DNA from: Saccostrea echinata
Taxonomy: Eukaryota
Direction: 5' to 3'
Assembly (NCBI RefSeq): GCF_033153115.1
Contig: NW_026889758.1
Coordinates: 2,852,001-2,916,000 of the forward strand
Length of the DNA: 64,000 nucleotides
A program made the position numbers and the translations under genes. How positions within the stretch are numbered: position 1 is the first letter of the stretch; each line of letters begins with the position of its first letter. This document shows positions 3,334-36,100 of this stretch, piece after piece. The notes beneath the pieces were generated by a model. That model worked only from the letters and a program-made list of their open reading frames with translations. It did no database searches and had not been told where the DNA came from.

Positions 3334-6300
3334 TTAATACTTTGACGTCCTGCGTTTTGAATACTGATTTATCTTTTGCAATGAATTTTGGAACAGCTGA
3401 CTTTGGTGTAGCACAGATGAACCAAAAATAACAGGTTGAAAATGTAAAGGAAGAAGAGGCTTCAGGCCCATAACATGTTTGTTGACTTGTTGTTGGATGA
3501 TATTAGGTTGCATAGGATACGGTGTGATAAAAGGTCTTATTGATAGGTTTGATGAAAATCTTTTTCCATACAATGGACGACTAGAATATCTGTTACCGTA
3601 AGTATTTTTATATCCATACCCCCGATTTCTTTTGTAGGGTAGATGAGGTGTAGTTCGGTAGCTGTGACCATAACCTGTTTTCTTATCATACGAATTCCTA
3701 GTGTTCAAACCATAACCATATCCTGGTTTTTTATCATATATTGTCTTCAAGCCTCGATATCCGTAACCATAACTATTTTTTCCGTAGCCATAATTCTGTC
3801 TTTTACTGTACGGATTCCTTTTGTAATACCCCTTATTAAGATTTTGTTTGTAGCTATTGGTCCAGGCCTTTTGTAAGTCGACATTCATAATCTCGTTTTC
3901 TAAGACATCATATGAAGACACTTTCTTTGATTTCGTTTTCTTTGGTTTGAACATAAAATAGAAATGCTGCTGTTTTTGTTTGGGTGCAGGAGCAGGAATT
4001 GGTTTGTTTGGTATATAAACTCTCGGTGTCGGTTCTGGTTTAGGAACAGGTGGCAGATTAATAGGGATTCTCCAAATTTGTAACCTCGGTGTTGGTTCAG
4101 GTTTTGGAGGAGGTGCAATTGGTGTTCTTAGAATTTGTAATTTCGGTATTGGTTCTGTTTTAGGAGGGGGAAGTGTGGGGGGAGGGAGAGTAAGGGGAGG
4201 GTTAGTCGGGGGAGGAAACGTTGGAGGGAATATTGGTGTTCTTAAAATTTGTAGCTTTGGAATAGGAGGGGGAGGGGGAGTTGTAGGGGATGGAGGTATA
4301 TACGTTCTATGAATTATTGTTCGAGACGGAGAAGGGGGAGGAGGAGGGGTAGGAGATGGGGGAATATAAGTTTTATGTACTATTGTTCGAGGCGGAGAAG
4401 GGGGAGGAGGAGGAGGAGTGGTAGGTGTTGGGGGAATATATGTTCTATGTATTATAGGAGGAGAAGGGGGAGGCGGGGGTGGAGGAGTAGGGGAGTGTAT
4501 TATCGGCTGAGGCGGAAAAGTGGGAGGTGGAGGAGGAGAAGGCGCCAGATAGGTTCTGTGTATTATTGGTTGAGGAGGATTTGTAGGGGGAGGGGGAGGG
4601 GTAGTTGATGGTACTGCATATGTTCTATACATTATTGGTTGAGGAGGAATCACTGGAACTGGAGTTGTTGGTTCGTAATTAATTCTGTTGATTTGGAGAT
4701 GATTGACCTGTAATGTTGGTGGGATGTATTCTATCGTATTGTCATCATCATTATATTTATGATAGATTCTACTTTCCTCTTGATATCTATTGTGATGTTC
4801 ACTTTCCCAAGCATGCTTGTCGAAGAAATTGCGATAATGGTTAACATTATTCTTTGGTGGATGTGCTTGAGCAGCGATGGGCAAGTGTTCTTCACTGCTT
4901 TTGTGGTAATCCTCAGCTGACGAGTAGTACTCCTGGCTGTAAGATTCAGAACTATCATCTTCCCACATATGTGCCATACTGTGACCAATCTCTTCGCTTC
5001 CTATTTCTTTACTTCCACTCTCCCCATCGCGTTCGTTTGATGTTGATGAAGACCTAATTCGAGACTCTGAATAAGAAGTAGTTCTTGTTATGCCTTTGTT
5101 ATGCTTATGATGTGGTGATAATGTCTCTTCACTACTATAATCGTCATATTCTTCACTTGCGCTCTTGTCATAGTTTATGTCTTTTCTATGCTTATAATGT
5201 GGTGATAAAATCTCTTCACTACTGTAATCGTCATATTTTTCACTTCCGCTGTTGTCATCGTTTAATTGGTGGAAAAAATCACTTCCTTTGGTTGATTTGC
5301 GATAAGCCTCTCTCAGCTTATTTGCAAATGCCACTGCGTCTTTTGCAACAAAGCGTTTGTTTTTCCATATACCCCCTGCTGAAAGGTTTTCCTTGGATTC
5401 ATCAACATAGTCATCACCTTCTCGACTTTCTCCATCACTATCAACATGTTTACCTTTATACGATGCAACAGTTGAGGGCGTTTTATTTGAGGAATCCTTG
5501 CTATATAGCTTTTTGTTCACCAATTTATATTTTGAAGACCGATCGTCATATTCGTCGACGTAATCTGGGGTATCCTCATATTGGTAATCAATGTCCTCTC
5601 CACTTTCGAAACTGTCGCCCTCTTCATCATGCCCAAAGTCTTTAACATAAAATGGTACTTTAAAGGAACCTTTCTTGTTCACTGGGTTTCTACTGTATGT
5701 CTTTTTATTAGGTACTTTAACCTTTGAAGACCGATCTTCGTATTCATCAACATAATCTGGAATATCCTCATATTGGTAATCAATGTCCTCTCCACTTTCG
5801 AAACTGTCGCCCTCTTCATCATGCCCAAAGTCTTTAACATAAAATGGTACTTTAAAGGAACCTTTCTTGTTCACTGGGTTTCTACTGTATGTCTTTTTAT
5901 TAGGTACTTTAATCTTTGAAGACCGATCTTCGTATTCATCAACATAATCTGGAATATCCTCATATTGGTAATCGATGTCCTCTCCACTTTCAAAACTGTC
6001 GCCCTCTTCATGATATTCAATGTCTTTAACAGAAACTGATTTCCCATAGGTAGCCTTATCATTTGATGTGCCCCTATCGTATGACTTTTCATCAAACATC
6101 TTAGCCTTTGCAGGCTTTTCTTCATTTCCATCGGTATAATCAGGGTTGTCCTTAGATTGATAATCATAATCCTCTTCATTTTCCAAGCTGTCATCCTCCT
6201 CATAATCGTACTTTCCGTCAATCTCAGTATGTTTCTCATTATAATGTTGGTTCGATATCTTTCTCTCAGGCTCGAGAGATGGCACTTCTTTTCTTTTGGT

Positions 6301-7629
6301 TATTTTGTCTGGGATTTGAAAACTGAAGAAATCTTTCCAGAGTAGACTTTCCAGCTTTCCATCTTCTACATTCCCTGCAGTATCAACACTACTAGCCTCC
6401 TTGTTTTCAGTTGCATGACTTGGTGTGTGATAATGATAATCGTGATCTGTTACTAGAGCGTGTGGTTCTTCATTTTCATTTATTCTCTTGTCTTGAGCAA
6501 CTGATTCAACTTGACTTTTGGGTATGAAATTCCATTTCAGGTTAAATAATTCATGATGTGGTTCTATCCGATTTTCGGGTTCCGATTTCCAATCAATGGT
6601 TTTTGATTCATGGAGTGGCTCAACATGACTTTTGGGTGCGAAATTCCACTCGGTGTTTTCTGGTTCCTGGAGTGATTCCATGGTTCTGTCGGGCGTAAAA
6701 ATCCATTCCGTGTTGTCTGCTTCGTGATGTGGTTCTGCCTGATTTTCGGGAGTATACATCCAATCAACATTATTTAGTTCTTGTTTCCCACCAAGTACCC
6801 TTATTATAAAGTCTGAAATATCATAATCGTCATCTTTTTCTTCTCTGTTTTCATCTCTTTCTTCAATGAGGTCTTCGATATCATCTTCGGATAGAAGTTC
6901 TTCATTTTCTTCATTCGTATTTTGTGAAATCCTTGTTCGAATAATAGGCGATTCGCTTTCAAATAAGCGTACAAAATTCAATAATAAACTTGTATTTTTA
7001 TCGCTTCCTATATTTACTGAATAATTTGCATTAACTGAAGAAAATTCTGAGGTGTTATTGACTTTTGTAGGTGGACTGACCTGTTCTTTATATTGTTTGA
7101 ATTTTGACAAAATATTTTGCAAAACTTTTCCTGGAATAACTTGAATTGTGTCATCTCGAGTGTCATTAATGTTTTCAGTGCTGTTACTCGAAATCCTTTC
7201 TTTTATCATTGAACGAAGTTTTCGTATCTTCTGCAGGAAACTTTGTATTTGTTTTAAGCGAATTGCATTGGTCTTTTTTAAGCGTATGCTATTATTCATC
7301 ATCATCTTTGGTTGTTCACGCGGTGCATCGTCTGCAGTGTTATTAAATTCATTATCAGGACTTTCTGCAGTGACAGATACGTTAAGTAAATGCGAATCCA
7401 ATGTGTCTTTTGACTGATTGAATGTTTTTACTTTGTTTACTTCTATCTCTGGATTTAGTTCTTGTGGGTCCGTAGGTTTTGCCTGCTGTTCATGCTCTGT
7501 TTTTGATGATAAGTTTGTTGGAAGTGTTGACGCAAACGCACTGGCTGTGGTTGCCGTAACCATGGTGGACGTTGGAGCGCCATCTACCAGGACTGCAACC
7601 AGCAAGACTGACGTAACAAAGCTCAACAT
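3334..7629 (-). CDS. Large secreted low-complexity protein (1431 aa), shell-matrix/adhesive-like: signal peptide, Trp repeats, acidic/basic 64-aa repeats, Ser/Tyr/Glu region, poly-Pro extensin-like region, basic Gly/Tyr/Lys/Arg tail
   Basis: 4.3-kb uninterrupted ORF in AT-rich DNA. The ATG at 7629 directly follows a splice acceptor (TTTCATTGCAG|ATG), so an upstream exon probably exists. Hydrophobic N-terminus MLSFVTSVLLVAVLVDGA. Internal repeats keep the reading frame (192-bp units). Stop TAA at 3334-3336. Confidence 0.88.
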   Translation of the reverse strand: MLSFVTSVLLVAVLVDGAPTSTMVTATTASAFASTLPTNLSSKTEHEQQAKPTDPQELNPEIEVNKVKTFNQSKDTLDSHLLNVSVTAESPDNEFNNTADDAPREQPKMMMNNSIRLKKTNAIRLKQIQSFLQKIRKLRSMIKERISSNSTENINDTRDDTIQVIPGKVLQNILSKFKQYKEQVSPPTKVNNTSEFSSVNANYSVNIGSDKNTSLLLNFVRLFESESPIIRTRISQNTNEENEELLSEDDIEDLIEERDENREEKDDDYDISDFIIRVLGGKQELNNVDWMYTPENQAEPHHEADNTEWIFTPDRTMESLQEPENTEWNFAPKSHVEPLHESKTIDWKSEPENRIEPHHELFNLKWNFIPKSQVESVAQDKRINENEEPHALVTDHDYHYHTPSHATENKEASSVDTAGNVEDGKLESLLWKDFFSFQIPDKITKRKEVPSLEPERKISNQHYNEKHTEIDGKYDYEEDDSLENEEDYDYQSKDNPDYTDGNEEKPAKAKMFDEKSYDRGTSNDKATYGKSVSVKDIEYHEEGDSFESGEDIDYQYEDIPDYVDEYEDRSSKIKVPNKKTYSRNPVNKKGSFKVPFYVKDFGHDEEGDSFESGEDIDYQYEDIPDYVDEYEDRSSKVKVPNKKTYSRNPVNKKGSFKVPFYVKDFGHDEEGDSFESGEDIDYQYEDTPDYVDEYDDRSSKYKLVNKKLYSKDSSNKTPSTVASYKGKHVDSDGESREGDDYVDESKENLSAGGIWKNKRFVAKDAVAFANKLREAYRKSTKGSDFFHQLNDDNSGSEKYDDYSSEEILSPHYKHRKDINYDKSASEEYDDYSSEETLSPHHKHNKGITRTTSYSESRIRSSSTSNERDGESGSKEIGSEEIGHSMAHMWEDDSSESYSQEYYSSAEDYHKSSEEHLPIAAQAHPPKNNVNHYRNFFDKHAWESEHHNRYQEESRIYHKYNDDDNTIEYIPPTLQVNHLQINRINYEPTTPVPVIPPQPIMYRTYAVPSTTPPPPPTNPPQPIIHRTYLAPSPPPPPTFPPQPIIHSPTPPPPPPPSPPIIHRTYIPPTPTTPPPPPPSPPRTIVHKTYIPPSPTPPPPPSPSRTIIHRTYIPPSPTTPPPPPIPKLQILRTPIFPPTFPPPTNPPLTLPPPTLPPPKTEPIPKLQILRTPIAPPPKPEPTPRLQIWRIPINLPPVPKPEPTPRVYIPNKPIPAPAPKQKQQHFYFMFKPKKTKSKKVSSYDVLENEIMNVDLQKAWTNSYKQNLNKGYYKRNPYSKRQNYGYGKNSYGYGYRGLKTIYDKKPGYGYGLNTRNSYDKKTGYGHSYRTTPHLPYKRNRGYGYKNTYGNRYSSRPLYGKRFSSNLSIRPFITPYPMQPNIIQQQVNKHVMGLKPLLPLHFQPVIFGSSVLHQSQLFQNSLQKINQYSKRRTSKY
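5430..6200 (-). repeat. Coding tandem repeat, 192 bp / 64 aa, ~3 near-perfect copies plus one degenerate copy
   Basis: GAAGACCGATC recurs at 5534, 5726 and 5918 (period 192). Unit EEGDSFESGEDIDYQYEDIPDYVDEYEDRSSKIKVPNKKTYSRNPVNKKGSFKVPFYVKDFGHD. Confidence 0.92.
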
Positions 7630-7865
7630 CTGCAATGAAATTTAAAAAAACATGTTTGAAAATCATAAGATTCGGTTGAGACGTAATCATTCATCTGCGA
7701 AATATTCAGATAGAATGTATCTATCACTTTTTAATTAAAATTACATTAAGCAATGCAAAAAGAAGAGACATATGATTAGAGTGGCATCAAGTTAAAAGCT
7801 ATTTTAGATGACAAAAATGATTAACTGAACGCAAATCAGATAAAACTGTATAAAAATGAAATCTT

Positions 7866-8036
7866 TAAAAAAATATTTAAAAATAAAAGTTTGATTATTA
7901 TTTAGTAAATGTATATCTGTATAACGGGCTCGGGGTTAGAATATTTTTTTTAAAAAATATTTAAAAAATAAAAGTTTGATTATTATTTAGTAAATGTATA
8001 TCTGTATATCGGTCTCGGGGTTAGAATATTTTTTTT
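7866..8036. repeat. Local tandem duplication, ~86 bp x2
   Basis: AAAAAATATTTAAAAATAAAAGTTTGATTATTATTTAGTAAATGTATATCTGTATA..CTCGGGGTTAGAATATTTTTTT occurs twice back-to-back. Confidence 0.85.
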
Positions 8037-10846
8037 AATTATAAAAATATCAGTTTCAAACATGCTTGTTGGCCATATGATCATCGATGTAATTTCTTCG
8101 CATTTCCAATATTTAAGTTTTATAATATTCGTTGCAATATGCTCTGGAATCTTTCCTTTGGGTACAATAATTTGTCGATCTGTATCGTTAACTTCTAATT
8201 TTATTCCGTTAAAGGCCCCTGTTATGGTTTCTTTGGTCAGTGTTTCAATTCACATGCATATTTCAATTACAAACGATCTGACAAAAGTTTATGAATAAAG
8301 TTAATGTATTTAATAGGACTAGTTTTATGCACTGCCCTTAAAAGAAAACTATGATGGGTTGGCCTTTCAGGAAAAAAATTAATAAACCAAAGTGACCGAA
8401 TTTTGATTTGTTGATGTTTTTAACCACACCTCTTTCTGAGACAGGTGAGTTGATTTAAGATTTTGACAAGTTTTCCGTCAGGTTTGACGGTTCATGATTG
8501 ACCCAGAAGTTCCGATTGAGTTATAGCTCCATTGCAAATATAATTATTATTTATTTTGAGAAACAAATCGTTATTTTTATCGGAGATATCATTTGCATGT
8601 ATAATGACCCATTAATTCTTTCTGATTTATGGCTTGGCTAAAACAAATCAGTATAGTATACCTCAAAAAGTACACAATTTAACATTTTTTTTTATAAAAG
8701 AAAGACGTTTAAAGTACGTTTGTATGTCACTATATCCATAAGAATTATTCAAAAAGTCAGTGTAGTAAAGAAATAAATATTGATATTGAGAAAATGTAGA
8801 TTATATGAACATAGAAATGGAGGGGGGTCAACATTATTATATGTATCTGAAAAATCATTAGTTTTTTGGGTGGTGGGGTGGGGGTTGATTGGTTTTTTTT
8901 TTTAAAGATAATACTATTTCTAGCATATGCTTATTTTAGAAGATTTTAAGATATTACTATGTATGCAAATTTATTAAGTTCAAGTTTTGAAGATATTTCT
9001 ATGCTAAGAGCATAATTATTTTAGTGTTTTAATGCTATTACTATGTAGAGCATACTTTTTAAAGAAGCTGTGAAGATATAAACTATGTAAATCCTTTTTT
9101 CACAAACAAGTTAGGTTGCTTTTATTTTTATCCCATTTTGAATTCTTAAGTGAGATGTAAAATCAAAATGATGAAGATTACGTTTAATAAGTATTAGGAT
9201 TTCTGCAGAAATGTTCAACACCCATTTACATGAACAGATCAAAAAATAAAGAAACTGCATGCACTTTACCAATTCAAGGATATTTTTTTAATATCATATA
9301 GAATAGTAGGCATTAAAGGTAAAAATATTTTTAAACTTATTTTGACTTACTGAGAATTGTGATGCTCAAGTTACATTTAGATAACAGTAAATTCCGTCGT
9401 GTAAGTGAGTTAACATTGTAATTTTTCAAAGTCAGCATACAATAAATACACAACATAGCCAAGTATTTTTGTTATAGAAAAAAGTTTGGACCTTAACATT
9501 TTCACCAATTTAAACTTATAAAACTACTTCAAGCTGAAGACTGACCTGTCTGCGTCCTCTGGTAATGACCAGTTTATTTTTAATCAAGTATAAAAAGTAA
9601 GTACTAAATAAGTATTTCAGTGCCACATGTCAAATATTACAACGAGGATAATCCAATATTACAATCGCATAATTAATATTGGCATCCTGCTTCAACGACA
9701 TATGACAAAATAAAGAATTTATTTATTTTTTTTTTTACAATTTTAAAGCAGTCATAATTATTACTTAATTGTTGTTATAGCAATGACATGCTGTAATGTC
9801 AAATTCGTGTGAAGTGAATATTCAAAACTGATATATATATTACTGAAGTACTATTGCTACATGTAACTGTTACTATGCATATCAAGCCCAGACATGTACC
9901 CTCTCCTCAACCTACTACCACCCTGGCGGCCAATTTTTCTGAAGATTAAAAGCTATTAAAGAACATTATTTTCTTGGATTTACTTTAGAGCTTTAAAAAG
10001 ATAACTTTGTTATTTAAATTTTAATTTTTAGGAAATAACTACTTAAATTTTAGTTGATTGCAATTACGTTTGTACTTACAATGAGTACTGAAAACGCGAT
10101 AAGTATCCAATATTTTAATAAATGGAATGGTATACCTTTTATAAAACAGTGCAGTACTTTTAAAAAGCTAGGAAATGATCACTGCACCGTGACATGTGCA
10201 GTTAATCGATCAAATCAGCGGAAGATATTTTTTTACAGTATCAAAATATACATTGTACATACCCTTTTGCCTGGAGTCCCGGTAGACTTTTCACTTCAGC
10301 AGTCCATTCATCAAATAAGTTAAAAACCAAACTCTCCCGAGTAAATTCTCCAGTGGCCCTGTGCCTTACATACTAATGAGAGAAGAAGGAAAGCTCTTCT
10401 GTGGTCACATTATTATTGGTGAATCTAATTAATACCAAATGATCGCCATAATTAGACATAATTGAGGGGGAAAGACAAAGATAAAAGGTTTCAAATGAAT
10501 CAGTTTTAGGATTTTGATTGGCAGTGAATATGGTTTTCAACTCTATAATAATTTGACTTGAATTTTAAATTTAATTGCAGTGTGTGTAAATATAGTAAAA
10601 ATCATGATATTTTTATTTATTATTAGCAATATATTTATTTAAGGCAGAGTGTAATTGCTGTGAATTTAAAATCGTCAAGCCCTGTTACATTTTGACACAA
10701 GTACAAACATACAACAGATGAAGGACTACCACTTTGTTTAACTCTCTAACTCTATAACATAAAATTAAATTAATATTATACATTTATAAAGAATAGATTT
10801 TATTGAAGTTTCTAAAAATGTGTTTTGCTTTTCAAAAGGCGTTATA

Positions 10847-13800
10847 TTATACCAATAAGTTTAAAAGTTTTACTTCTTTAAATTCACATTTACAATGTGA
10901 TGTCGGACATTTCGGACAACTTTGTAAACACCACTGAATCATTCCCGGAACGGAACGCCAACGCTTAGTAGGGCGACAGTTCATTTGATTGGCTTTGTTT
11001 TTAACCATGTCAATGTATTTTCCGCTTCCTTTTCTTTTCAATTTTGAAACCATATCTTCATCCGATATTTCACTGGTATCTTCACTAGATTTTTTGTTGT
11101 CGGTTTCTTCTGAGTCTTCTGTTGAATCTTTTTGTATGATTTTTATCTTCTTTAGGATGCTTATGTCAGCACAGTTGTAGAATTGTTCTTGTGGACCAAG
11201 CCCAATACCACATCCGCTATCACCACAACCCCAGCTGTTACCTGAATGAAAAAAAAATGTTTTCTTTGGTAAACTTTGCATCAAGCTGAAATTTATTTCC
11301 TTGAAGAGGAATCAACCTGGTACTAGATGTTGGTCTGTGACTACATAGAAATCCTGATTGTATTACCTGCGTTATATTTCCATTGAAGAACACATTTTTT
11401 GCATGAAAAATCAGATGGCAATTTGATCCTCAATGAAATCAGTTTCTGTTTCCCAACATAAAACCTCTTGACGGTTCTTTTCCCTTTGTTATTGGGTAGT
11501 ATACGTAATACATTCTTATCTAGGCACTCCTGGGTGACAGGTTGGTCACTGTTGTCATGGGAACAGAGTTTGAACTCCATCCATCCTAAGTGGTTGGCAG
11601 TTAGATTGACAACAACGTCAATATCCTCACCGGAGCGATACGTTCTGATTACGACCCCCTTTCCAAAGAACCCACCGTCCTCGTTAGGGCGGGGTGGCAG
11701 AAGATCGTAGGCGTCCCCACAAATACCACATTTACCGCCATTCTGAGTCCAGTGGCGCTAGAAATAAGGCAGAATATTAGTAACATTTAATACAATCCCC
11801 TAGGAATGAATTGTCACGTCTTTATCTTCAACATCTCTTTTATTGTTTTCTCTTTTAAAACATTCTCTTTGTCTTCTTTTGAAATAAAAATAAAATCATT
11901 AGTAAGATAAAAAGTTTTTTTTTTTAAATATTTTATTCTGTTTTCTTTGGATCTGCAAGCAACTGAAAAATCAATTAATTATCACCATTTAATCCTTTTT
12001 TATGCCCCCGTATCGAAGATTGGGGGTATATAGTTTTTGCCCTGTCCGTCTGTCTGTCTGTTTGTCCGCAAAAACTTTAACATTGCCCATAACTTTTGAT
12101 TGGTTGGAGCTATGACTTTCATATTTCACATGTGCATTCCTTGTGACAAGACCTTTCCTTGGGCACCCTCATATTTGACCTTTTGATCTTGACCTTGGAG
12201 TTTGACCATCTTTTACAAAATTTTATGAGACTTTAACCTTGGCCATAACTTTTGAACAGTTGGTGCTTTGGGTTTCAAACTTCATTTGTATATTTCTTGT
12301 GACAAGACCTTCCTTTGGATACCAACAACTTTGACCTTTTGATCTTGACCTAGGAGTTTGACCTACTTTTGAAAAACTTTAACCTTGGCCATAACTTTGG
12401 AAAGGTTGGTGTTAGGGTTTCCATTTTTAAAATGTCAATTCCTTGTGACAAGACCCTCTTGGATACCAAGCACTTTCACCCTTTGACCTTGGGGTTTAAC
12501 TTACTTTTGAAAAACTTTTATCTTGGTCATAACTTTTAATCATTTTGTGCTAGGGCTTTCATACTTCACATGTGCATTCCTTGTGACAAGACTTCCCTTT
12601 GGATACCAACAATTTTGGCAGTGACCTTGACCGAGGAGTTTTGAACTACTTTTAAAAAACTTTAACCTTCGTCTTTACATGTGAACGTTTGGTTCTAGGG
12701 CTTTCACATTTCACGAACATTGTGTATCACTAGTGACAAGACCTTCCCTTGGGGCCCCATTTGACCTTGACCTTGACGTTTTACTTACTTTTAAAAAACT
12801 TAAACCTTCGCCATAACTTTTGAACAGTTGGTGCTAGGGGTTTCAAATTTCACAGGTATATTCCTCGAGACAAGACCTTTCTTTTGGTACCAACATTTTT
12901 GATCTCTTGACCTGGAGTTTGACTTGCATTTCAGAAACTTTAACCTTCGCCATAAGCTGTCATACAGGGGACATCAGTATTTCACAAACACATTTTGTCT
13001 TTTTAATATCACGACGTATATTTTTCAATTCTTATAGTTTAGCATATATATGCAAAACATATGCTAAACTGTCTCGGACATTTGTTTAAGTTCGGTATGA
13101 TAGATAGACACAGCAAGTAAATGATGATGAATTGGATAAAGCTTGTTTTTTTCATGATTTTGCATGTCCACAGCGATGTTTCTTTATAGCTTCATAAGCA
13201 CGTGACACATCAGCAGGGCAGTTATCATGAGTTCAAAGAGGTCAAACTATTTCATTTAAACGCAGTCCTCATCATATTTTTGCTGTCGATACCGCCTTTC
13301 CACGCACTTCAATAAACAAGTATTTTGCGCGGTGGAAAAATGATGAATGTCACCTCAATGATAACTCAAGGTCGAGACGCCCCAAAGAAATGAAAAACAA
13401 TATTAAAATTTGTCTCTTCAACTGAAAAACGGTACCATTCGTCACTCTTAATTAGTAGCAAAATTTCATCTCTTAAAGTAGTTCTCTAAGTTCGTGCCTC
13501 TTAGTTCATTTTCGTAATAAAGTCTAGATGGGAAGTTTTTTTTTCCCCCGTGACTGCTGATACATGCTAAGAAGACTATTGAATCTATAGCTACAAAGTA
13601 AACGAGCATCAGAACTCAAAACTTTATAACCATTGATACCCTAAAAAAAGAAGAAAAAAAAGTTGTACAAGGAGATAATGAACCTAAAATTGTTGTAATA
13701 CGACTTATTTGAATTATAATTTATAATAAGTTAAACAAAGATACAGTGCCATATCAAATATCAGAGCTTCCAATTAAAGCCCTTATTTCATTAGCACAAG

Positions 13801-15853
13801 ATAGACAATTGTCATGTACATGTACTTAGTCCAATTCTAAAATACCAAACGTGTTTTTTTAGTTAAATGGTAAGTTTCTCAGAAAAAAATCCCTTTTCTA
13901 TCCAAAGCTTTGAATCGTTTAAAGCGATGAATTTTTTTAATGAAATTCTGTAGATTAAAAGTAAAAAAGTTTTACGCCTCCTTATTGCGATCGATCAAAG
14001 AGAATCTTTTATAAAAATACCAGGAAGTGAGTGAAAAACTTCAACCTCTAAACAAGATATCAAAGCCTGGATCAAAATAGCAACTTCTTCTGGAGAAAAA
14101 CTTAGTTCTAAATAGCACCTAAAAGTATAAGAACCAGATGTTTAAGAATATCAATGATATTAATTTTTTTTTACCTCTTAAAGAATTTAATCTCTTTTGA
14201 CTTTTTACCTATCTAGTATGTAAAAATAGATTTGGTCAGGATACCGGTGTACCTGACCTGACTACAGATATGTGGGGATAAAGTGACCCAGCTTAAGTTT
14301 ACAGATGATATACGTTACTAATGCGGTCTATTTATAAACATCATCGTACATCAAAATGTATTCTTTTACGTCTTTCCTAAAAGCAAGTCGTCCAGTTGAC
14401 GAAGCATATAATTTATAGATAATTCATCAACCGGACAACAATTAACAGGACACAATTAATTTGTCCACTGTAAAAGGTCAACAACTGAATTATACAATGC
14501 AGTTGATTAATATTTTCTGAATGTTTAAAATGAATAAAAAAAATTAAAAAGCATATAGCCATAAAGATAGAGTTGTGTAAACCGATAACCTTTTAAAGGA
14601 TTTTTTAATCAACAGGTAAATTCATCAAAGCTTTGCAACTGAATGTGTAAATTAATGTCATTGAAGAATGTATTTGTTTTAGGATCTACAACATGACTTG
14701 TTATCTTAAGAATGTTAATGCACGTCCTTATAAATTCTTTTGTGCATAATGCCCTATTTGTCTAAAAATTATTAAAACAGACGAATAATTTTTCCATACA
14801 AAGTTATATAACTATTGGAGTTGAGTTACAGTTTAAAAGACGAAAAATAAGNNNNNNNNNNNNNNNNNNNNNNNNNNNNNNNNNNNNNNNNNNNNNNNNN
14901 NNNNNNNNNNNNNNNNNNNNNNNNNNNNNNNNNNNNNNNNNNNNNNNNNNNNNNNNNNNNNNNNNNNNNNNNNNNNNNNNNNNNNNNNNNNNNNNNNNNN
15001 AATTTTTTCCCCTTAAAATCTTTTGTATCCAGTTCATTATATCTAAATCTCATTTCATTTGTAAATGTACTAATTCTACATTTAACAATTGCTTTGATTT
15101 TAAATGCCATCATACTAATTAAGTTTAATTTTTTTTCTAGTGAACTAAATAGTGAGAAAGCTAAACCGTGAAAGATTTATGGTGCGTGCATGTAATTGTA
15201 ATTTTCTACTGACAGAGGTCGTAAAAGTAAGCAGTAAGGTGGGACATTATCTGAAATTTATTATAAATACTTTAGTAATAGTAGACATTATATATGATTA
15301 AACGTGTATTTTCTACCCTCCCTTCTTCCAATCAAGTGTTCTGATTTTTTGAACTTATTTCAGCAGAGAAAACATATCTTTATGACCCCTGAATTCAAAT
15401 CAAGTTAATATTCATCACTTAAGCAACGTTAAATATTGATTCTATCATTGCATATTAAAATCTACTTTAATCAATTTTACTTTAAAGTTTAAATATTAAA
15501 ATTATTTTAAGTTATGATTAAAGGTGAGATTAAAAAATATCGTATATATCATCCAAGTTTTTACCTTATTGGAAGTGTAAAACATTTCTTATTACAAAAG
15601 TGATTGTTTTATTTAAACTGGTTGATTTCATTTTAATTATAAATGTCTGTGAATCAACCATCCCGCCACTCACCTTAAATCCGCCACAATTAAGGGCGTT
15701 ATCATTGTAATTATCAGGCCCGAGTCCATGTCTCCAGAGAGAGGAACGCTGGGGTGGTTCCACGAGGTATCCATGGCCTTTGGTTCTAGGAAGGCCGTAA
15801 AATATCACGACAATCAAAATCCAGAGCCAGCGCATACACGGAGTCCACTGCAT
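10847..15853 (-). CDS. Lytic polysaccharide monooxygenase, AA15 family (chitin-binding type-4 domain), 321 aa, with C-terminal six-Cys module; exons 15674-15853, 11367-11757, 10847-11241
   Basis: A 26-aa signal peptide precedes His1 (G|HGYLVEPPQRSSLWR). Family motifs NYNDNALNCGG, NGGKCGICGD, LTANHLGWMEFKLC, CVLQWKYNAGNSWG and GPQEQFYNCADI are present. GT-AG junctions are phase-compatible (0 and 1) and give an intact frame. Confidence 0.93.
11995..12998 (+). mobile_element. Second HINE/pearl-like non-autonomous element with ~6 internal ~130-157 bp tandem repeats, in LPMO intron 1
   Basis: 5' TTTTTATGCCCCC..GGGGGTATA hairpin then a (GTCT)n microsatellite. Monomers contain CCTTGTGACAAGACC and TGACCTTGACC. 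3' GGGGACATCAGTATTTCACAAACACATTTTGT. Confidence 0.75.
14852..15000. other. Assembly gap (149 N) in LPMO intron 1
   Basis: Run of N. Confidence 1.
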
Positions 15854-18238
15854 CTTGACTGTGTGCAACCATCGGAAACCAGAGAAATTTAAATAAAATT
15901 GGTAAAGAAGGAGGAAGGTGTTTACAAAGGCCAGACTTATTGCAACTGCAGGGTATGAATGTGTATCACACAATGCACAGAGTCTTTTGTGGGTCAAAAA
16001 TACCGGCTAGCGACGTTTCCATATGAACTTTGTGACCTATACCTTAAACATCTGAGATTTGGGTCTGTTTGGGGGTAATTAATAATAAACTAACAACACG
16101 GTCGAATGTCAAAAGGCATAGGATGAGATCATTACAACAGAGGTATAAAACTCATCAAAGGGATAAGTCAGCAAATCTTAAACAGAAACTTTTTAAAACA
16201 TTCAAATATCATTTAAGCCAAGACAGATTTTTAAATTCACTACATACGAGTGAGAGAGAGAGAATATAGTGGTCAAGTTAGTCTAAGTTCAATTTCCTTT
16301 ATTTCACTTTGCTAATTTACATGCTGATATTTATGGCTTGAATTCATAGAATCCTAAACAACCTGTATTTCGGGGAATATTAACGGACACCGGAGACCTA
16401 GAATGACGGTAAATTGGACACTCTGCAAATTCTAAGAATTATGAAGCTTTAATTTAATAAGGTATATCAGGATTAAAATATATGTACTGCTTTTGAATTG
16501 TTCTTAAAAAAGGCCATTCAGGGACAGCGATTGAAAAGTTAAGTTCACAAGAAAAATCATTACACTGTATTCATTTCAAAGGGATGATAAATTTTATAAT
16601 CCATTGTATAACTTAAGCTGTGACATTCATAAAAGTTTCTGTTAAGCCACAAATATTTGTATTGTATTTTAAAGTTGTATGTGTGTGAGTGGGGAAGATG
16701 GGGGTAGAAAAAAAATGACAATTTACCTGAAAAATCTTTGTCAAGCCCTAAAAGGGATATTTGTCCAAACTCGTAAAATCCCATTTCGTGAGGAGTGGAT
16801 GGGGTGGGTGGGGGAGAAAAATTTTGAATATTAACATGAAATGATTTAAGTATTTCGTAACAAAAAGAGGTGGTCAACTGGCCTTTCAATGATCATTTTC
16901 ATACTAAATCAACGATGAAACGATAAAAAATTATGTTCGGAAAAGGGGTAGCTGCCCCTATACTACGTTCCTGTATACACACCGCTAATTTTATACTCAT
17001 CTTAGAGCGTATTGATTCCAAATTTTTGATTTTACGTTGGTATAATCATTTAAATTGGATAGTGCATTTTTATTTCCATGATATATAAGGTTCAACAAAC
17101 GAACCTAATGGTTTCCTCAGGCAAGTCTGACGTCGTCCTTCCCTAGTGACACAAGTACATTTTAGGCGACTCTCATCACGAATCTAAAGTCTGAATAAGA
17201 CTTTGTTCGTAACCCTTCAGGATAATACTCAAACCATGCACTTATTATAGCTAAATCACAATTGAGTCATTGTTAAAGTAAAATTATTTTCACTCTAATG
17301 CACTATTTATCTGTAATTTTATAATTAACGCTGATTTAACGATATTTTTTGTCTCATAAGAACATTAGACAAATAGTATTAATATTTATGGGTACATTCA
17401 AAATTTCGATTTGATACTTGTAATATTTGATCTGTGATATGAACCTTATCGGGCGCGTTATTCAAGGTAGTCCCTACCATGGCAAAAGAAAGCAAAGCAC
17501 AAAGCACAAACAGGTATTTGAAAGAACATCATGAAGATCACAAAAACTTTATTAAGTTACCCCACCCCCAATTTATTAGGTATATATTATCCAGAATATT
17601 TTTGCTATTTAAACTTTAGTTACCTTAAGCTAACACAAGATTTTCACTTCAATTTTAGCCATTTTGTTGTTGTTGTTGTTGTTGATTTTATGTTCTTATT
17701 TCACATACATTTTGAATAATATACTTCTCTGTTTATAAGTAGCATGTTTGACATATAGGAAAAGTTTTATTTTTTATTTAATCATACGTAGTACTTGATT
17801 GCACAACATATACTTAGACAGTACAGAATATTTGTTTACAAATAAAATATTAAGCTAGATCTTATAATAAACAACACAAAATAAACACTGCATGGCCTGT
17901 CTAAAAAAAGAGATTTTTCAAAAATTAAAAAAAAAAATAAGATTGAATGGGGTGAAATGAAATGATTGAACCTGCACAAAATTTGTTCTCTGGGCGTTTT
18001 CTTTGTTTTAAAATAAGTTAACGTACATGTATGTGTTTCGAGTGCAAAACTAGTATTACATTGTATATTAATAAACAATGTAAAGATTTTCAGAAAACTT
18101 TATTTGATGAACAAATTGATATCATTTCTTACATCTATTATTATCACTTATTAAGTTGCTTTCATTAGAAATCATCCTTGATATATACACTGTTAAAGGG
18201 TTTAATCAAAATGGGTCAATATTTCTTATCGCTTAACA

Positions 18239-21200
18239 ATGGCGAACATAGCAGCTGTTCTACATGGAGCAAATGACTTGCGAGTTGTAAGCATTTTTTA
18301 TATAAAGAAATTGCAAATACACTTTTCACTCGTCTACTGTAAAAGTTGATATTATTGCAAGATATTTTTAGGGCACCTGCTTAATTCATGTAAATCCTAT
18401 ATGTACAAATATATTTGTCAACGCACCTGCCATCATTTCAACGGTAATGGGTCAATTGGCCACCAGACTTTATATATCCGACTTGGAAATATGAAATAAA
18501 TAACAGATCTTTAGCAGCTAATTCATTATAGCTTTTGTTTAAGTAACACCACAATCTGTTAACTCTCTCCCTTTTAAGTACAGTTCTCTGTATAATTTTC
18601 TCTCATTAAGGAATCTCTCATTCTAATTTTCAGGAATCAATTCCTCTGCCTGAAATAAAGGAAAATGGTATGTCCCTTTTAACTTTTGAGTCATAAAGAT
18701 ATTTTGACAAAGCAGTATTCTACTTTAAGGATGAATTTTTTTTTCATATTTATTGTCTTTAAAATTTCATTAAATTTCACACAATCAAGAAGCTAATATA
18801 TCACTAAGTTATGACATCATATCAGTGAACCGACTTATTTTAGTAACAGTCAGGTCAAGGTCATCAAGTTTTTTCTCGACATGAAGGATTAAAAATTACT
18901 GTTGCCATGTTATGTCCACTTCTATTAAAAATATGTTTGTTCATCTTTTTGCATTAAACAGATAATACCACATGAGGTCTAACAAGAATAACAAGGCTGT
19001 AGTTTGAAAATTTTTATTTATATATTTCAAAACTTCTAGTTTCTAATAATAATTTTCATTGGCTTAAAAAAAAAAAACATTTAGGACTTTCATTGTTTTA
19101 AACAGCGAACTTAATTCATTATCCATAGTTAATTGGAAAAGCAAATCTTGTGATATTTTCCTACGCTGTTTTTCTGCCAAAAATATACTCCCTGCTAAAT
19201 TTTAAACTCAGTGTACCCTATAATTGTCAAGTTGTACAGTTGTAAGAAGGCAAGAAATATATGAAAAATTCCTAACATCTCAATATATTGGACATTTATG
19301 CAAATATACTTCAATGTTTTAATTAGTCAGAATCCTGGCAAGAATACCTCTTTAAGTGGAGTATATTTAACGAAATGTTTGTTAATCGGTTGCATTTCGT
19401 ACAAAGTTCTTGAAAACGTTTTGAACAGAAGTCCTCCTATCAATGAGATCGGTGGGGATCTGCGGGTCAGACCTGAAGTACTGGATGTATGGCAAATGCG
19501 GAAAGTTCACCCTGGAGAAACCCATGATTATGGGTCATGAGGGCAGTGGAAAGGTGGTCAAGCTTGGAGCAGGGGTCAAGAACCTGAAGATAGGTAGGAC
19601 CTTTGAAAATAGATAGGATCTCTCAAAAGAGATATGGGGATCAAGCTTGGAGCTGGGGTCAAGAACCTGAAGATAGGTAGGACCTCTGAAAATAGATAGG
19701 ATCTCTCAAAATAGATATGGGGGTCAAGCTTGGAGCTGGGGTCAATCATCTCAAAATAGGTAGGATCTCTCAAAAAAGATGAAGTAATCAAGCATGAGGC
19801 TGGGGTAATACATCTATGAAATATGAAGATAACGAACAGTATTCAATCTCAAAAGTCCAATGAAACGATACAAATTTGGAGAAGAGCAAACACGGACCTC
19901 AAAATTTAGAGGTGGGATCAGGTGCCATGGAGGAGTGAGCATCCCCTGCCGACCGGTCACACCCGCCGTGTGCTCCTTCATGATCGGGAAACAAAAACCA
20001 GAAAAATCCGTAGAAAGTTCAGTGTATAAATAATGGCCTAACAATTAGTATGAAAAACGCCATCAGCCTTTGACTCAATGATAGGTTGTATGTACTGATA
20101 AGTCATTGTATCGAACAAAAAAACTTGCGAAAAGATGACTTCAAACGAGACATTTGATATCCTTGTTTCGTCAACTTGTTTGTCAATAGCTTGCCTCGTT
20201 TTAGAAATTATTTATACGTTGAGCATGCTCTTGCGTATCGAATCAACTGAGAGACATAAACCCATATGCAGATGATAAGGGTATATTGCTACATAAGTAA
20301 AGGATGTTGACGATTGAAAAGTTGAAGTCATCACGTTTATCATAAAGCTTTGTTGTTAGTTTACCCTTTACGTCTTTTTCTAGTAAAATATCTAAATATC
20401 AAACAGATGTGTCAGAATCTGTGGTATCTTTTCTTTCAAGCTCACTGGGATATATCGAGTCGACATATGAATGAAAGTAACTATTGTTAATTGATAATAC
20501 GTCGTCGATATATCGGAATGTCGAGTTGAAGGCCATAGTAAGTGTTTTCTTCTACTTCATATGAATACAAAAATAGGTCTGTTAATAAGGGGGCGCAATT
20601 GGTACCCATATGAATTTCATTTTCACCTGCATTCATTTGTCAACTCGATATATCCCATTGAACTAGAAGTAAAAACACTACAGAGTCATATTTGAATGTT
20701 TTACTTAATATAAACGTTCATGTCAAACTAACAACTTTCCACATTTATTATGCAATAGTATTCCATGTTCACCTGCATGTGGTGTTTGTGTTATCCAGCT
20801 GATTCGGTATAAAAAGAGCATACTCTGAGGCAGATCAATCTTTAAACTGAGACAGATTACTGGCTTATAAATCGATGTTATGAGGCTTTCAACTATATCG
20901 TTTAAAGTCAGCATTTCTCAAATTCTGTGGCCATGTTCGCATTCAAAAACCATGAGTGGGGCGAACTTTGACGGACATGTTTCAGACCATTAATTATTAG
21001 GCTATTATATTCTTGCTATAACTGACTACGGATAACTCCATTTGCCTGATCCATATATAGTATGGCTGATCGACAGGGGATGCTTACTCCTCCTAGGCAC
21101 CTGATCCCACCTCTGGTGTTTCTCTGCCTTGTTCGCGGCTGATTTTGTGAGATCTCTGTTCGTTATCTTCAGCTTTTTCAGCTACTAGTTATATATTTTA

Positions 21201-24200
21201 TTCTCATTATTTAGTGTTATTTGTCTGAATTTTTAAACAACCACATGGATTAATAATATTTCACTGGTAAACATCGTTCTCTTACTTTCAGTAATTCAAT
21301 ACAAAAGATATAAACATGGATGCCAGTATTTCAGAATTTTTTTATTGCTTTTGCTAAGACAATTTATTTTATGTGTCATGAGAAATTAAAGTAACATCAT
21401 TTGCTCAGTATACTCTTTATGGAAAGAATAGCTTTCCATAAGAATAATATTCATTACGTAGAAGATTGCGTAATATATCTTACATGAGAATTTTTATGAA
21501 ATACTTCAAATGTGACACGTTTTCTGTCTCTGGAAAGCACAGTAGTTGTTGAAAACCCTCTGGTTTTCTCATCCTTACTTAAGTTCATCAGAACGGGTGA
21601 TAAATCATTTTATGAGTGCAATCGTAATTGATGCCTTTTTTCTTTAAAAATAACTTTAAAACAAAGAATACGATAAGTAACACAGTTAAATCAAACTACT
21701 GTTACTAGGCAAGATTCTACATTCTCTAATCTTAACCTAAATATTTATTAAACTTGCTGAAGCTTTGTAAGATTATATTTACTATGTACGAGGGTATTTT
21801 TTAAAGTTCTGAAAATGGTTAATGGTTCATTGATAACTGATGGATTTGAATGCAAATTTAAAATAAGAATGAATGTCACCATACCAAAATACAGTATTTA
21901 TATATATATTTTTAAATTATGATCGTATAAAATGGGAAGATTTGACAGCTGTCAGGAATTCAGGTCCAATGTAATATTTTTTATCAATTGCTGACACTTT
22001 CTCAAATTGAACCACAAGTATTTAATATATGAGAAACGGGTTATTGAATGACTTTTTATTGTTTACGTCCTTACAAAGCAATCGTGCACTGTTTCCATTA
22101 TCGACATAGTACAGTAATGTGTGATTTTGACAATCATATCAGATGATGTTACTATTTCTTTTAAATAAGAACATTCAAGCCTTGTAAAAGTCCTAACGAC
22201 ACTATAATCTACCAGATGAAGATTGATAACTTTGAAAAAAATTACATGATGTAAGATGAAATGCAAATTGATTAAATTTCTGGAGTTTTCAACATTGTGA
22301 CAATCCCAGTGTGAACCATAAAAAGCCTGTTAAAATTGAGCAGACAGTTACTTTTATTTTCTAGTCATTATATATTACAAATTAAAGATGATGTCAAATG
22401 AATTCTCTATAAGTTTAATTCTTGGCACGTTCCTTAAGCTTTAAATAAACAGCCTTAAAATACATGTATGTGTGATCTAAATATGATGGATTGGTGGACA
22501 ATAAACGACATTAATTAAAAATTAAATTATCTTATATAAAGGAAAATATTAACTGATTACTGTAAATAGATACATCTTAAAATTTATTTTAGTTTTGGTT
22601 GACGAATGTTAGCTGTTGTCTAATATAACTCCTTTCTTACAATTATCCTGTGGAATGGAATTGAAATCCTCTGTTTACATATTATCTTTTTTTTAAATTA
22701 AGTTTAAAAAGAACTTTCTAAGATGAATTTCACATTGCTCTGTTTGAAGCCAAAGTTGCAACATTGATACTTGGAGAAAAGAAACATCTAAATTCAGTAC
22801 TAGTATTTGTAAACCCTCAAGTATTGTTTACTAAGACTAAATAGGGTGACCAGATTTATCAATTCTTACTAGAGATTCCGATTTTTTTTTTATTTATTGA
22901 GAATCCCAAGAATAAATTAATTTACATAAGACCAAATGATTATTTTAGATTATTTGAAATCATTAACCACAAATAAATCCATCATGACAAAATCTCCCAT
23001 AGAATATTTATGTATTTCAGCAAGATGTGTAATAGAATTTAATTGACATTCTTCGTTGTGTCCTATCCTGTTCTGTAAATCAGTATTACTTACGTGTGGT
23101 AATTAAATAAAGTATTGCGAAAGCAGTTTATATGTACGCTGTATCCAATATAACATTGAAAATTAATTTCATTTTAACATTTTTTATGTCCATTATCATG
23201 ATTTTACAAATTGAAACCAAAAATCTGTATTTCCTCAATAATATGAGCTTGCATCTATGGTTAACATTTAAAGTGAAATCATTTTAAGTTAACAGCCCAT
23301 CACTTTGATAAACAATGTTAGCAGTATATGAACAGGAGTTATGAATGTTGTTCACCATTGATATAAATAGTTATGAATGTTGTTCACCATTGATATAAAG
23401 TTATGAATGTTGTTCACCATTGATATAAATAGTAATGAATGTTGTTCACCTATGATATAAATAGTTATGAATGTTGTTCACCATTGATATAAATAGTTAT
23501 GAATGTTGTTCACCTATGATATAAATCACAAAATGTAAGTAAGCAAATGGTTTTCTTCCCAATATAGTTTTACTTCTTTCACCATCACTTGTGATACCCG
23601 TGGAAACCAACTTCGTAACGTTTGCACATTCTTCCGTTGCCCCCACACCCGAGAATAGGATAGTTTCGGACAGATTATGCGACGTATGTAATTCACCAAT
23701 GGAGAGTAAACAGTCAAATTTATAAGATCTCTGTGTCTTTTTAATAGATTTGAATGAATGAAATATACTTATAACGAACACGGTCATGTTCATAAGTCCA
23801 ATTAAACAATACAATTGAGAGCAGATCAAATATGAACCTTTGAAAATATCAGAGATTGGATAAGGTGCCGTGGAGGAGTAAGCCTCTCCTGTCGACCGGT
23901 TTCACCCCTTTGAGTCATTTGCATTGATCTATTAAACAGAAAAATACATAGAAAATTCAGTATGAAAATAATGGCCTAACATTTCTTTTTTAAAAACCTC
24001 AATCTTAAGACAGATTTTATTTACAAAGTCATTGTATAACCCATGGAATTTGCAAAATATTGGCCTTAAACAAGATTGTTGATACTCATGATTCATCAAC
24101 TTATTTAAAGTTAGCATACCTCCGATAAGAAATTGTTAGTACGTGAAACATGCTCTTGCGTATCGAATTAATCAGAAGACATGAACACCATATGCAGGTG

Positions 24201-36100: not shown

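Follow-up and report, generated by a model that had tools for sequence, protein, structure and literature searches.

To our knowledge it is poorly known how molluscs shape and turn over the chitin framework of their shells, for which attention usually falls on chitin synthases and chitinases; in oyster data sets from shell and mantle, LPMOs have so far, as far as we know, appeared only as a listed domain. The closest described enzymes are the AA15 LPMOs of two insects, TdAA15A and TdAA15B of Thermobia and DmAA15A and DmAA15B of Drosophila. The available part of PMC5823890 describes an AA15 catalytic domain with ten conserved cysteines, an axial phenylalanine as the chitin-type state found in the chitin-specific TdAA15B group, and roles of insect AA15 enzymes that also include digestion and the chitin of gut and tracheae. 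In oysters, LPMO_10 is among the domains of the Magallana gigas shell proteome (PMC11464482, section 16, as far as this source was available), and LPMO-domain proteins have been reported from the shell proteome and from one mantle cell type of oysters, the paralogue not being specified in the available main text. These proteins belong to the same domain family, and come from the same animal family, as the LPMO described here. The Saccostrea echinata genome contains roughly 30 AA15 places, scattered over many contigs, and the shell and mantle papers therefore do not point to this particular gene.

We analysed a window of 64,000 nucleotides of S. echinata DNA. It holds four intact genes at the positions given in a first-pass annotation, and these almost certainly are what that annotation had named: a gene for a secreted repetitive protein (below, the disordered protein), an AA15 LPMO, a sorbitol dehydrogenase and goosecoid. 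Open reading frames, exon matches and Pfam and PDB hits bear out both identities and positions. The LPMO gene lies upstream of the disordered-protein gene on the same (minus) strand, with 3.2 kb between 7635 and 10850, in agreement with the tandem that had been described. Likewise, the start codons of the LPMO (15853) and of the dehydrogenase (18239) confirm that these two genes are divergent and 2.4 kb apart. The features of the LPMO gene and its upstream flank are as follows:

15674..15853, minus strand: LPMO exon 1, coding part, with the predicted signal peptide (residues 1-26) and the putative mature N-terminal His27 (exon match to P0198)
11367..11757, minus strand: LPMO exon 2, AA15 domain core including His116 (LPMO_10, E 3.4e-12)
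10850..11241, minus strand: LPMO exon 3, end of the catalytic domain (Phe211), acidic Ser/Asp/Glu linker, 6-Cys C-terminal module and stop (exon match)
14852..15000, no strand: assembly gap within LPMO intron 1 (protein-to-window alignments)
15854..18238, no strand: 2.4-kb stretch separating the start codons of the divergent LPMO and sorbitol dehydrogenase genes

The LPMO gene is complete in these three exons, and their junctions are canonical (GT/AG). The LPMO, dehydrogenase and goosecoid genes were searched exon by exon, and whole-protein work used the database records P0198 and P0006. P0198 (RefSeq XP_061174101.1, S. echinata) matches the three exons with residues 1-60, 59-193 and 188-321, while P0006 from Ostrea edulis aligns with residues 6-68, 67-201 and 196-324; since both align with nothing left over, the gap hides no LPMO coding sequence. 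From residue 27 onwards P0198 covers the full Pfam LPMO_10 profile (1-183, E 7.8e-20). His27, which follows the hydrophobic leader, corresponds to profile position 1, and signal cleavage would make it residue 1 of the mature LPMO. A PDB sequence search returned 5MSZ (TdAA15A) as the sole match (E 1.8e-56, 45% identity), with His27 aligned to His1, His116 to His91, Ala114 to Ala89 and Phe211 to Tyr184. All 34 aligned homologues share H27, H116 and F211; the set comprises 32 sequences hand-picked from 285 matches (mostly with a query coverage of about 89% or higher), together with P0014 and P0312. P0312 is the M. gigas orthologue and carries the UniProt name 'Chitin-binding type-4 domain-containing protein'. 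Residues 27-219 of P0198 contain ten cysteines, eight of them in invariant or nearly invariant columns of this alignment.

The predicted structure of the LPMO resembles 5MSZ in Foldseek (TM 0.91 normalised to 5MSZ, rmsd 1.9 A, E 3e-22), and the next matches are AA10 enzymes with E values of about 1e-6. By sequence and by modelled fold alike, the nearest family of the LPMO is AA15, ahead of AA10 and the other LPMO families. Its earlier designation as a secreted copper enzyme of this family is upheld by the predicted signal peptide, the His brace, the axial Phe211 and the 5MSZ match; judged from sequence and model, it is an intact, secreted, chitin-type AA15 with a full His brace. Signal peptide, N-terminal histidine, second histidine, axial aromatic residue, ten cysteines and fold are shared with the Thermobia and Drosophila enzymes, as far as PMC5823890 was available. 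Unlike those insect AA15s, the oyster LPMO continues beyond its catalytic domain with an acidic Ser/Asp/Glu linker (about 60 aa) and a 6-Cys module (about 32 aa). This module is common to other lophotrochozoan AA15 proteins in the 34-sequence alignment, is modelled with a pLDDT of 70-84, and had no Pfam match even at E values of up to 5.

The entire coding sequence of the neighbouring gene lies in one exon, with the following features:

3334..7629, minus strand: disordered block protein (ORF 3334..7635, real ATG at 7629; window protein P0001)
5531..6035, minus strand: 192-bp (64-aa) unit in tandem, 2.6 copies (94% identity), with acidic Tyr-rich and Lys-rich halves in alternation
4265..4493, minus strand: 66-72-bp repeats (x3.3) encoding the polyproline block (tandem-repeat search)
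7630..7650, minus strand: pyrimidine-rich tract ending in CAG and abutting the ATG, resembling a 3′ splice acceptor (read from the sequence)

A further tandem repeat (87 bp x 2) is present in this gene, which is single copy in the S. echinata genome. Its product of 1431 aa has a hydrophobic N-terminal signal and no cysteine, and is built of an acidic Asp/Glu/Tyr/Ser block (241-960), a Pro-rich block (961-1200) and a basic Lys/Arg/Tyr/Gly block (1201-1431). With a mean pLDDT of 31.9, its predicted structure contains only short helices, which coincide with conserved islands; together with the N-terminal signal this makes the protein secreted-looking and disordered, in line with its earlier description as a secreted repetitive protein. 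The acceptor-like tract directly before the ATG suggests that a non-coding 5′ exon probably lies upstream. S-x-E motifs occur 14-31 times per protein in five of five orthologues versus 7.9-11.8 times in shuffled sequences, an excess that is partly an effect of composition because whole-sequence shuffles ignore blockiness.

No Pfam, NCBIfam or PDB match was found for the disordered protein, and a PDB profile search also returned none. A word-indexed search with 8000 scored candidates gave five matches, all of them the protein itself, oyster proteins or proteins of the same architecture, and a profile search recovered three proteins among 8000 candidates. By blastp against 319 fetched proteins, only oyster orthologues matched, and none of the 16 long LPMO-bearing proteins did. 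In an Atlas search the best score (0.79) and that of an 'Enamelin' cluster (0.76) were both under the noise level of the tool and count as leads at most. Within the databases searched, no similarity to the disordered protein was seen outside oysters. As comparators we take the low-complexity acidic and Gly/Tyr-rich proteins of mollusc shell matrices, such as aspartate-rich proteins, shematrins and Lys-rich matrix proteins. By composition only, the disordered protein has in common with these a signal peptide, compositional blocks without a folded domain, acidic stretches open to phosphorylation and a basic tail rich in Gly and Tyr. It differs from them in its much greater length, its lack of cysteine, its long polyproline block and its oyster-only relatives.

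New here is that the order of LPMO and then disordered protein is kept in other oysters, and this tandem is very probably a conserved feature of the group. In Saccostrea cucullata both genes are on one scaffold of 241,851 bp, and in M. gigas they are LOC105322064 (LPMO) and LOC105322066 (disordered protein), two locus numbers apart. Furthermore, in a UniProt model of M. gigas (A0A8W8HPM3, P0310, 1615 aa) the LPMO (residues 1-283) continues into the complete disordered protein, in the order seen in the window. In Magallana angulata and O. edulis, both genes lie on the same chromosome-size contig. Of the microsynteny that the first-pass annotation had asked about, part is borne out, for this pair and among oysters: the order is seen again in S. 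cucullata and M. gigas, and M. angulata and O. edulis show a shared chromosome only. An orthologue of the window LPMO from Crassostrea virginica was absent among the 120 matches listed. Gaps between accession or locus numbers were tried as a proxy for position and rejected (200 in M. angulata versus 2 in M. gigas), and the O. edulis gap of 490 is uninformative for the same reason.

Our main reading, to which we give a probability of roughly 0.4, is that the four genes of the window are separate and lie side by side by descent, and that the LPMO and the downstream disordered protein alone behave as a unit. The M. gigas fusion raises a different view of the same pair, namely that the LPMO promoter reads through into the downstream frame and that splicing yields a chimeric LPMO-scaffold protein like the 1615-aa model. 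P0310 joins its two parts through a short translated leader, the acceptor-like site at the ATG would place the 5′ exon of the disordered protein upstream, and AA15-like domains with long tails do exist in this genome, as in a paralogue with a 2128-aa tail. However, RefSeq separates the two genes in S. echinata, S. cucullata, M. gigas, M. angulata and O. edulis, and the LPMO ends normally in six of six transcript-length Logan contig proteins examined. In the window, the equivalent donor codon combined with either candidate acceptor leads to a stop or to the wrong frame, and a chimera would drop the conserved 6-Cys module. We therefore regard a single chimeric transcription unit as very unlikely. 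A bolder form of the two-gene reading, in which the pair is an old, conserved Ostreidae cassette, co-transcribed at least in part by read-through, that supplies the growing shell matrix with a chitin-oxidising enzyme and a block-copolymer scaffold of its own, also appears unlikely, if somewhat less so.

Since local gene order is broadly kept in oysters, the kept tandem is weak evidence for shared function. The LPMO and the disordered protein could serve unrelated purposes, such as an LPMO of digestion or the gut lining next to a mucus, egg-coat or adhesive protein, and be adjacent only because oyster gene order changes slowly. The many AA15 places across contigs fit this well, as do the digestive, gut and tracheal functions of insect AA15s reported in the available part of PMC5823890, and the M. 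gigas fusion is a single model, compared with six normal transcript-length contig proteins. On the other hand, order and strand are the same in Saccostrea and Magallana, a public model splices one gene into the other, both products have predicted signal peptides, and LPMO-domain proteins are known from the oyster shell proteome and mantle cells, as far as these sources were available. We consider mere adjacency a serious possibility, at somewhat less than even odds, and only tentatively favour the idea that the two proteins work together in a chitin matrix. A literature search on accession and locus numbers of the orthologues returned no papers, although supplementary lists of shell proteins and markers may name the genes. 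The pair is likewise undescribed in the available parts of PMC5823890, PMC12046283, PMC9484238, PMC11464482 and bioRxiv 10.64898/2026.05.15.723513. Five sequencing runs matched positions 3334-11800, one with 0.56 of the words and three with 0.07-0.10; none is recorded as RNA, and their labels are coded.

The other two genes of the window have the following structure:

18239..36100, plus strand: sorbitol-dehydrogenase-like gene, nine exons (Pfam exon by exon, PDB matches)
18239-18286, 18634-18667, 19429-19593, 31564-31723, 31911-32029, plus strand: dehydrogenase exons 1-5
32970-33035, 33127-33302, 34738-34859, 35941-36100, plus strand: dehydrogenase exons 6-9
52775-52997, about 53190-53397, 54843-55271, plus strand: goosecoid-like gene, three exons (Pfam Homeodomain on exon 2)

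Intron 3 of the dehydrogenase gene spans 12 kb and is rich in repeats. Its exons match the Pfam domains ADH_N and ADH_zinc_N, and exon 3 shows Cys and His-Glu motifs, which we take to be zinc ligands of the zinc MDR family. The goosecoid-like gene has an eh1-type motif in exon 1 and a paired-type homeodomain with the Lys50 context in exon 3; we assume that the eh1-type motif and Lys50 are marks of goosecoid. CpG observed/expected ratios are 0.59 for the dehydrogenase exons, 0.69 for the disordered protein, 0.81 for the LPMO exons and 1.07 for goosecoid; as a proxy for expression breadth this measure was dropped, as the range of 0.59-1.07 separates the four genes unclearly. Goosecoid had been called the next gene after the dehydrogenase, and this is consistent with the region between 36.1 and 52.7 kb, which contains no gene-like stop-free frame of at least 70 aa, though short exons might escape such a scan.

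The first-pass annotation had gone further and proposed a co-regulated module of all four genes that would remodel shell chitin oxidatively. The confirmed adjacency, the head-to-head LPMO and dehydrogenase with start codons 2.4 kb apart, and the expression of goosecoid in scaphopod and cephalopod shell fields and aculiferan spicule cells (PMC12046283, as far as available) speak for such a module. However, the dehydrogenase has no signal peptide, and its best PDB matches are the sorbitol dehydrogenases 1PL6, 3QE3 and 1E3J. Because it also matches solved sorbitol dehydrogenases from its own first residues, the enzyme looks cytosolic and probably is; if so, it cannot meet a secreted LPMO. Goosecoid begins 16.7 kb past the dehydrogenase stop and 37 kb from the LPMO, outside the interval 3334-36100 to which the proposal referred, and is linked by position only; moreover, a transcription factor near a gene is no evidence that it regulates that gene. 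The four-gene module thus appears highly improbable.

If the LPMO and the disordered protein do act as a unit, both would enter the secretory pathway and go out into a chitin-protein extracellular matrix, and the likeliest destination would be the mantle-made matrix of shell or periostracum. The LPMO would hold copper between His27 and His116, with Phe211 in the axial position, and cut chains of crystalline chitin oxidatively, perhaps anchored by its acidic linker and small 6-Cys module. The disordered protein would serve as a scaffold, in which the acidic, S-x-E-rich block of Tyr and Ser could take up calcium or mineral once modified, the polyproline block may be a stiff spacer, and the basic tail rich in Tyr and Gly might be cross-linked or bind acidic partners. 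Sorbitol dehydrogenase and goosecoid would be bystanders. The paralogue with the 2128-aa tail (G000:C48, loci L001+L002) offers a parallel, as it joins an AA15 fold to a very long disordered secreted region. There, a mucin-like, Ser/Thr-rich tail is in frame with the last LPMO exon; its sequence is unrelated to that of the window's disordered protein, and both brace histidines are substituted (Arg and Met). Such an arrangement is what the window pair would give if its two proteins met on chitin, and were the cassette real, the pair would be a split version of the proteins found elsewhere in the genome that combine an AA15 domain with a giant tail.

If the two genes prove unlinked, the window is an ordinary, well-annotated stretch of an oyster chromosome, and the value of the analysis lies in retiring the idea of a four-gene module. 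For shell chitin, an intact chitin-type AA15 enzyme kept beside a lineage-specific, disordered secreted protein across oyster genera provides a concrete, testable pair.

All four genes that the first-pass annotation had tentatively joined into a module for chitin remodelling, encoding a disordered protein, an AA15 LPMO, a sorbitol dehydrogenase and goosecoid, were recovered where it had placed them. The spacings of 3.2 kb (disordered protein to LPMO) and 2.4 kb (LPMO to dehydrogenase) were correct, and goosecoid is the next recognisable gene. We take the stretch to be four separate genes.

Features of the four genes (window positions)
3334..7635, minus: open reading frame of the disordered protein (coding sequence 3334-7629, ATG at 7629, product 1431 aa)
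about residues 241-960 of the disordered protein: acidic Asp/Glu/Tyr/Ser block
residues 961-1200 of the disordered protein: Pro-rich block
residues 1201-1431 of the disordered protein: basic Lys/Arg/Tyr/Gly block
10850-15853, minus: LPMO gene
15853-15674, minus: LPMO exon 1
14852-15000: assembly gap (N) inside LPMO intron 1
11757-11367, minus: LPMO exon 2
11241-10850, minus: LPMO exon 3
10853-10950, minus: C-terminal 6-Cys module of the LPMO, about 32 aa, modelled at pLDDT 70-84
18239-36100, plus: sorbitol dehydrogenase gene, nine exons
52775-55271, plus: goosecoid, three exons

The LPMO product is the Saccostrea echinata RefSeq protein XP_061174101.1 (P0198), and its record and that of the disordered protein lie on one 54,306,292-bp contig; the window itself corresponds to G000:C9:2852001-2916000 of the assembly. 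The exons, with splice junctions GTGAGT/TAG and GTAATA/CAG, were searched singly rather than as a joined model, and whole-protein tests were run on P0198. The protein matched the Pfam LPMO_10 profile full-length from residue 27 (E 7.8e-20), and its sole match among PDB sequences was Thermobia TdAA15A (5MSZ, E 1.8e-56), with His27 aligned to His1, His116 to His91, Ala114 to Ala89 and Phe211 to Tyr184. The predicted model (domain pLDDT about 90) superposed on 5MSZ with a TM score of 0.91 and an rmsd of 1.9 Å, followed by AA10 enzymes at E about 1e-6. H27, H116 and F211 were unchanged in 34/34 homologues of a hand-chosen set; an axial Phe is given as the mark of the chitin-active type in PMC5823890. 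The catalytic domain is followed by an acidic, disordered linker (pLDDT under 50) and then by the 6-Cys module, which matched no Pfam family, is common to other lophotrochozoan AA15s and hardly varies among the AA15 proteins of molluscs and annelids. Since P0198 and the O. edulis orthologue each align across the three exons with 0 residues unaccounted for, no LPMO coding sequence is missing at the assembly gap. Intron 1 also holds, at 11990-13000 (minus), a row of near-identical short reading frames, suggesting a tandem or dispersed repeat.

The disordered protein begins with a hydrophobic signal, contains 0 cysteines and found no match in Pfam, NCBIfam or PDB. Its gene, present in one copy per genome in a search of the S. 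echinata assembly, carries repeats detected by Tandem Repeats Finder (192 bp x 2.6 at 94%; 66-72 bp x 3.3; 87 bp x 2). Modelled with AlphaFold from a six-row alignment, residues 1-1198 had a mean pLDDT of 31.9 and only isolated helices, which coincide with conserved islands; because the alignment is shallow, the model is compatible with disorder rather than proof of it. The whole coding sequence lies within one exon, its ATG directly preceded by a pyrimidine tract with a terminal CAG, and the gene probably has a non-coding 5' exon.

Collinear orthologues of the disordered protein were found in S. cucullata (63% identity), O. edulis, M. gigas, M. angulata and C. virginica, and none beyond oysters within reach of protein searches; clear LPMO orthologues occur in the first four. 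Microsynteny across oysters held for this pair in two genera, and a third does not contradict it. The two proteins come from one 241,851-bp contig in S. cucullata and from the loci LOC105322064 and LOC105322066 in M. gigas; for O. edulis as well as M. angulata, a single chromosome-size contig carries the two genes. As a conserved gene pair the two are new here and modestly interesting. A public Magallana gigas gene model of 1615 aa (P0310, UniProt A0A8W8HPM3) fuses LPMO residues 1-283, without the 6-Cys module, to the entire disordered protein by way of a short leader, in the gene order and strand of the window. Known from that single model, the fusion reflects either read-through RNA or an artefact of annotation. 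All 6/6 transcript-length M. gigas LPMO contig proteins read in Logan have the normal end, and equivalent joins in the window are out of frame or meet a stop. Adjacent genes often remain together among oysters, so its conservation in the tandem argues only weakly for a common function, and a pure bystander adjacency is nearly as probable as the functional pair that we favour.

The AA15 family in S. echinata is large. The core exon of the domain matched roughly 30 places on many contigs of the 923-Mb assembly, a lower bound in which some places may be duplicate haplotigs, and at several of them the last exon stays open for 227-562 aa. One paralogue lies on another contig:

L001:1100-10000 with L002 (its two loci), = G000:C48:53600-63035 of the assembly: AA15-like paralogue, with a twin place on G000:C58

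Both of its brace histidines are replaced, the first by Arg and the second by Met, and its last exon has an in-frame, Ser/Thr-rich, mucin-like extension of 2128 aa. The whole resembles a non-catalytic chitin-binding fold with a giant tail attached. Since this genome does attach giant disordered tails to AA15 folds, there is still room for the bolder, rather improbable reading of LPMO and disordered protein as an old, at least partly co-transcribed Ostreidae two-gene unit for shell matrix.

The other two genes fit a common module poorly. Searched one at a time, the dehydrogenase exons matched Pfam ADH_N and ADH_zinc_N, and the closest solved structures (1PL6, 3QE3, 1E3J) belong to sorbitol dehydrogenases and to a ketose reductase; its start has no signal peptide, so the enzyme is probably cytosolic. 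Goosecoid, which encodes an eh1-like motif and a homeodomain with Lys50, is reported to be expressed in shell fields (PMC12046283), which favours a four-gene module, but it is connected to the others through position only; with the dehydrogenase apparently cytosolic, such a module is very improbable.

Repeats occur elsewhere in the window. The repeat-filled, 12-kb intron 3 of the dehydrogenase (19600-31560) is dense with short, recurring pieces of ORF in both orientations. At 58119-58973 (minus) a 284-aa ORF built from a unit of about 30 aa, in a stretch where the GC skew is strong (0.41 for 58-60 kb), looks like satellite rather than a gene. Upstream of the four genes, two copies of one stop-free frame of about 45 aa (911-1189 and 1939-2214, plus) are probably a repeat family.

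In published data, LPMO_10 is among the M. gigas shell-proteome domains (PMC11464482), though this need not be the same paralogue, and two chitin-binding type-4 proteins mark mantle cell type 2 together with chitin synthase (bioRxiv 10.64898/2026.05.15.723513), which again need not include the window LPMO. Overall, the original observation holds, and its interpretation finds partial support, in the secreted pair rather than in the four-gene module. LPMO and disordered protein are a conserved secretory pair, and with a probability that we put at about 0.4 they would meet in a chitin-protein matrix, most likely that of the shell.
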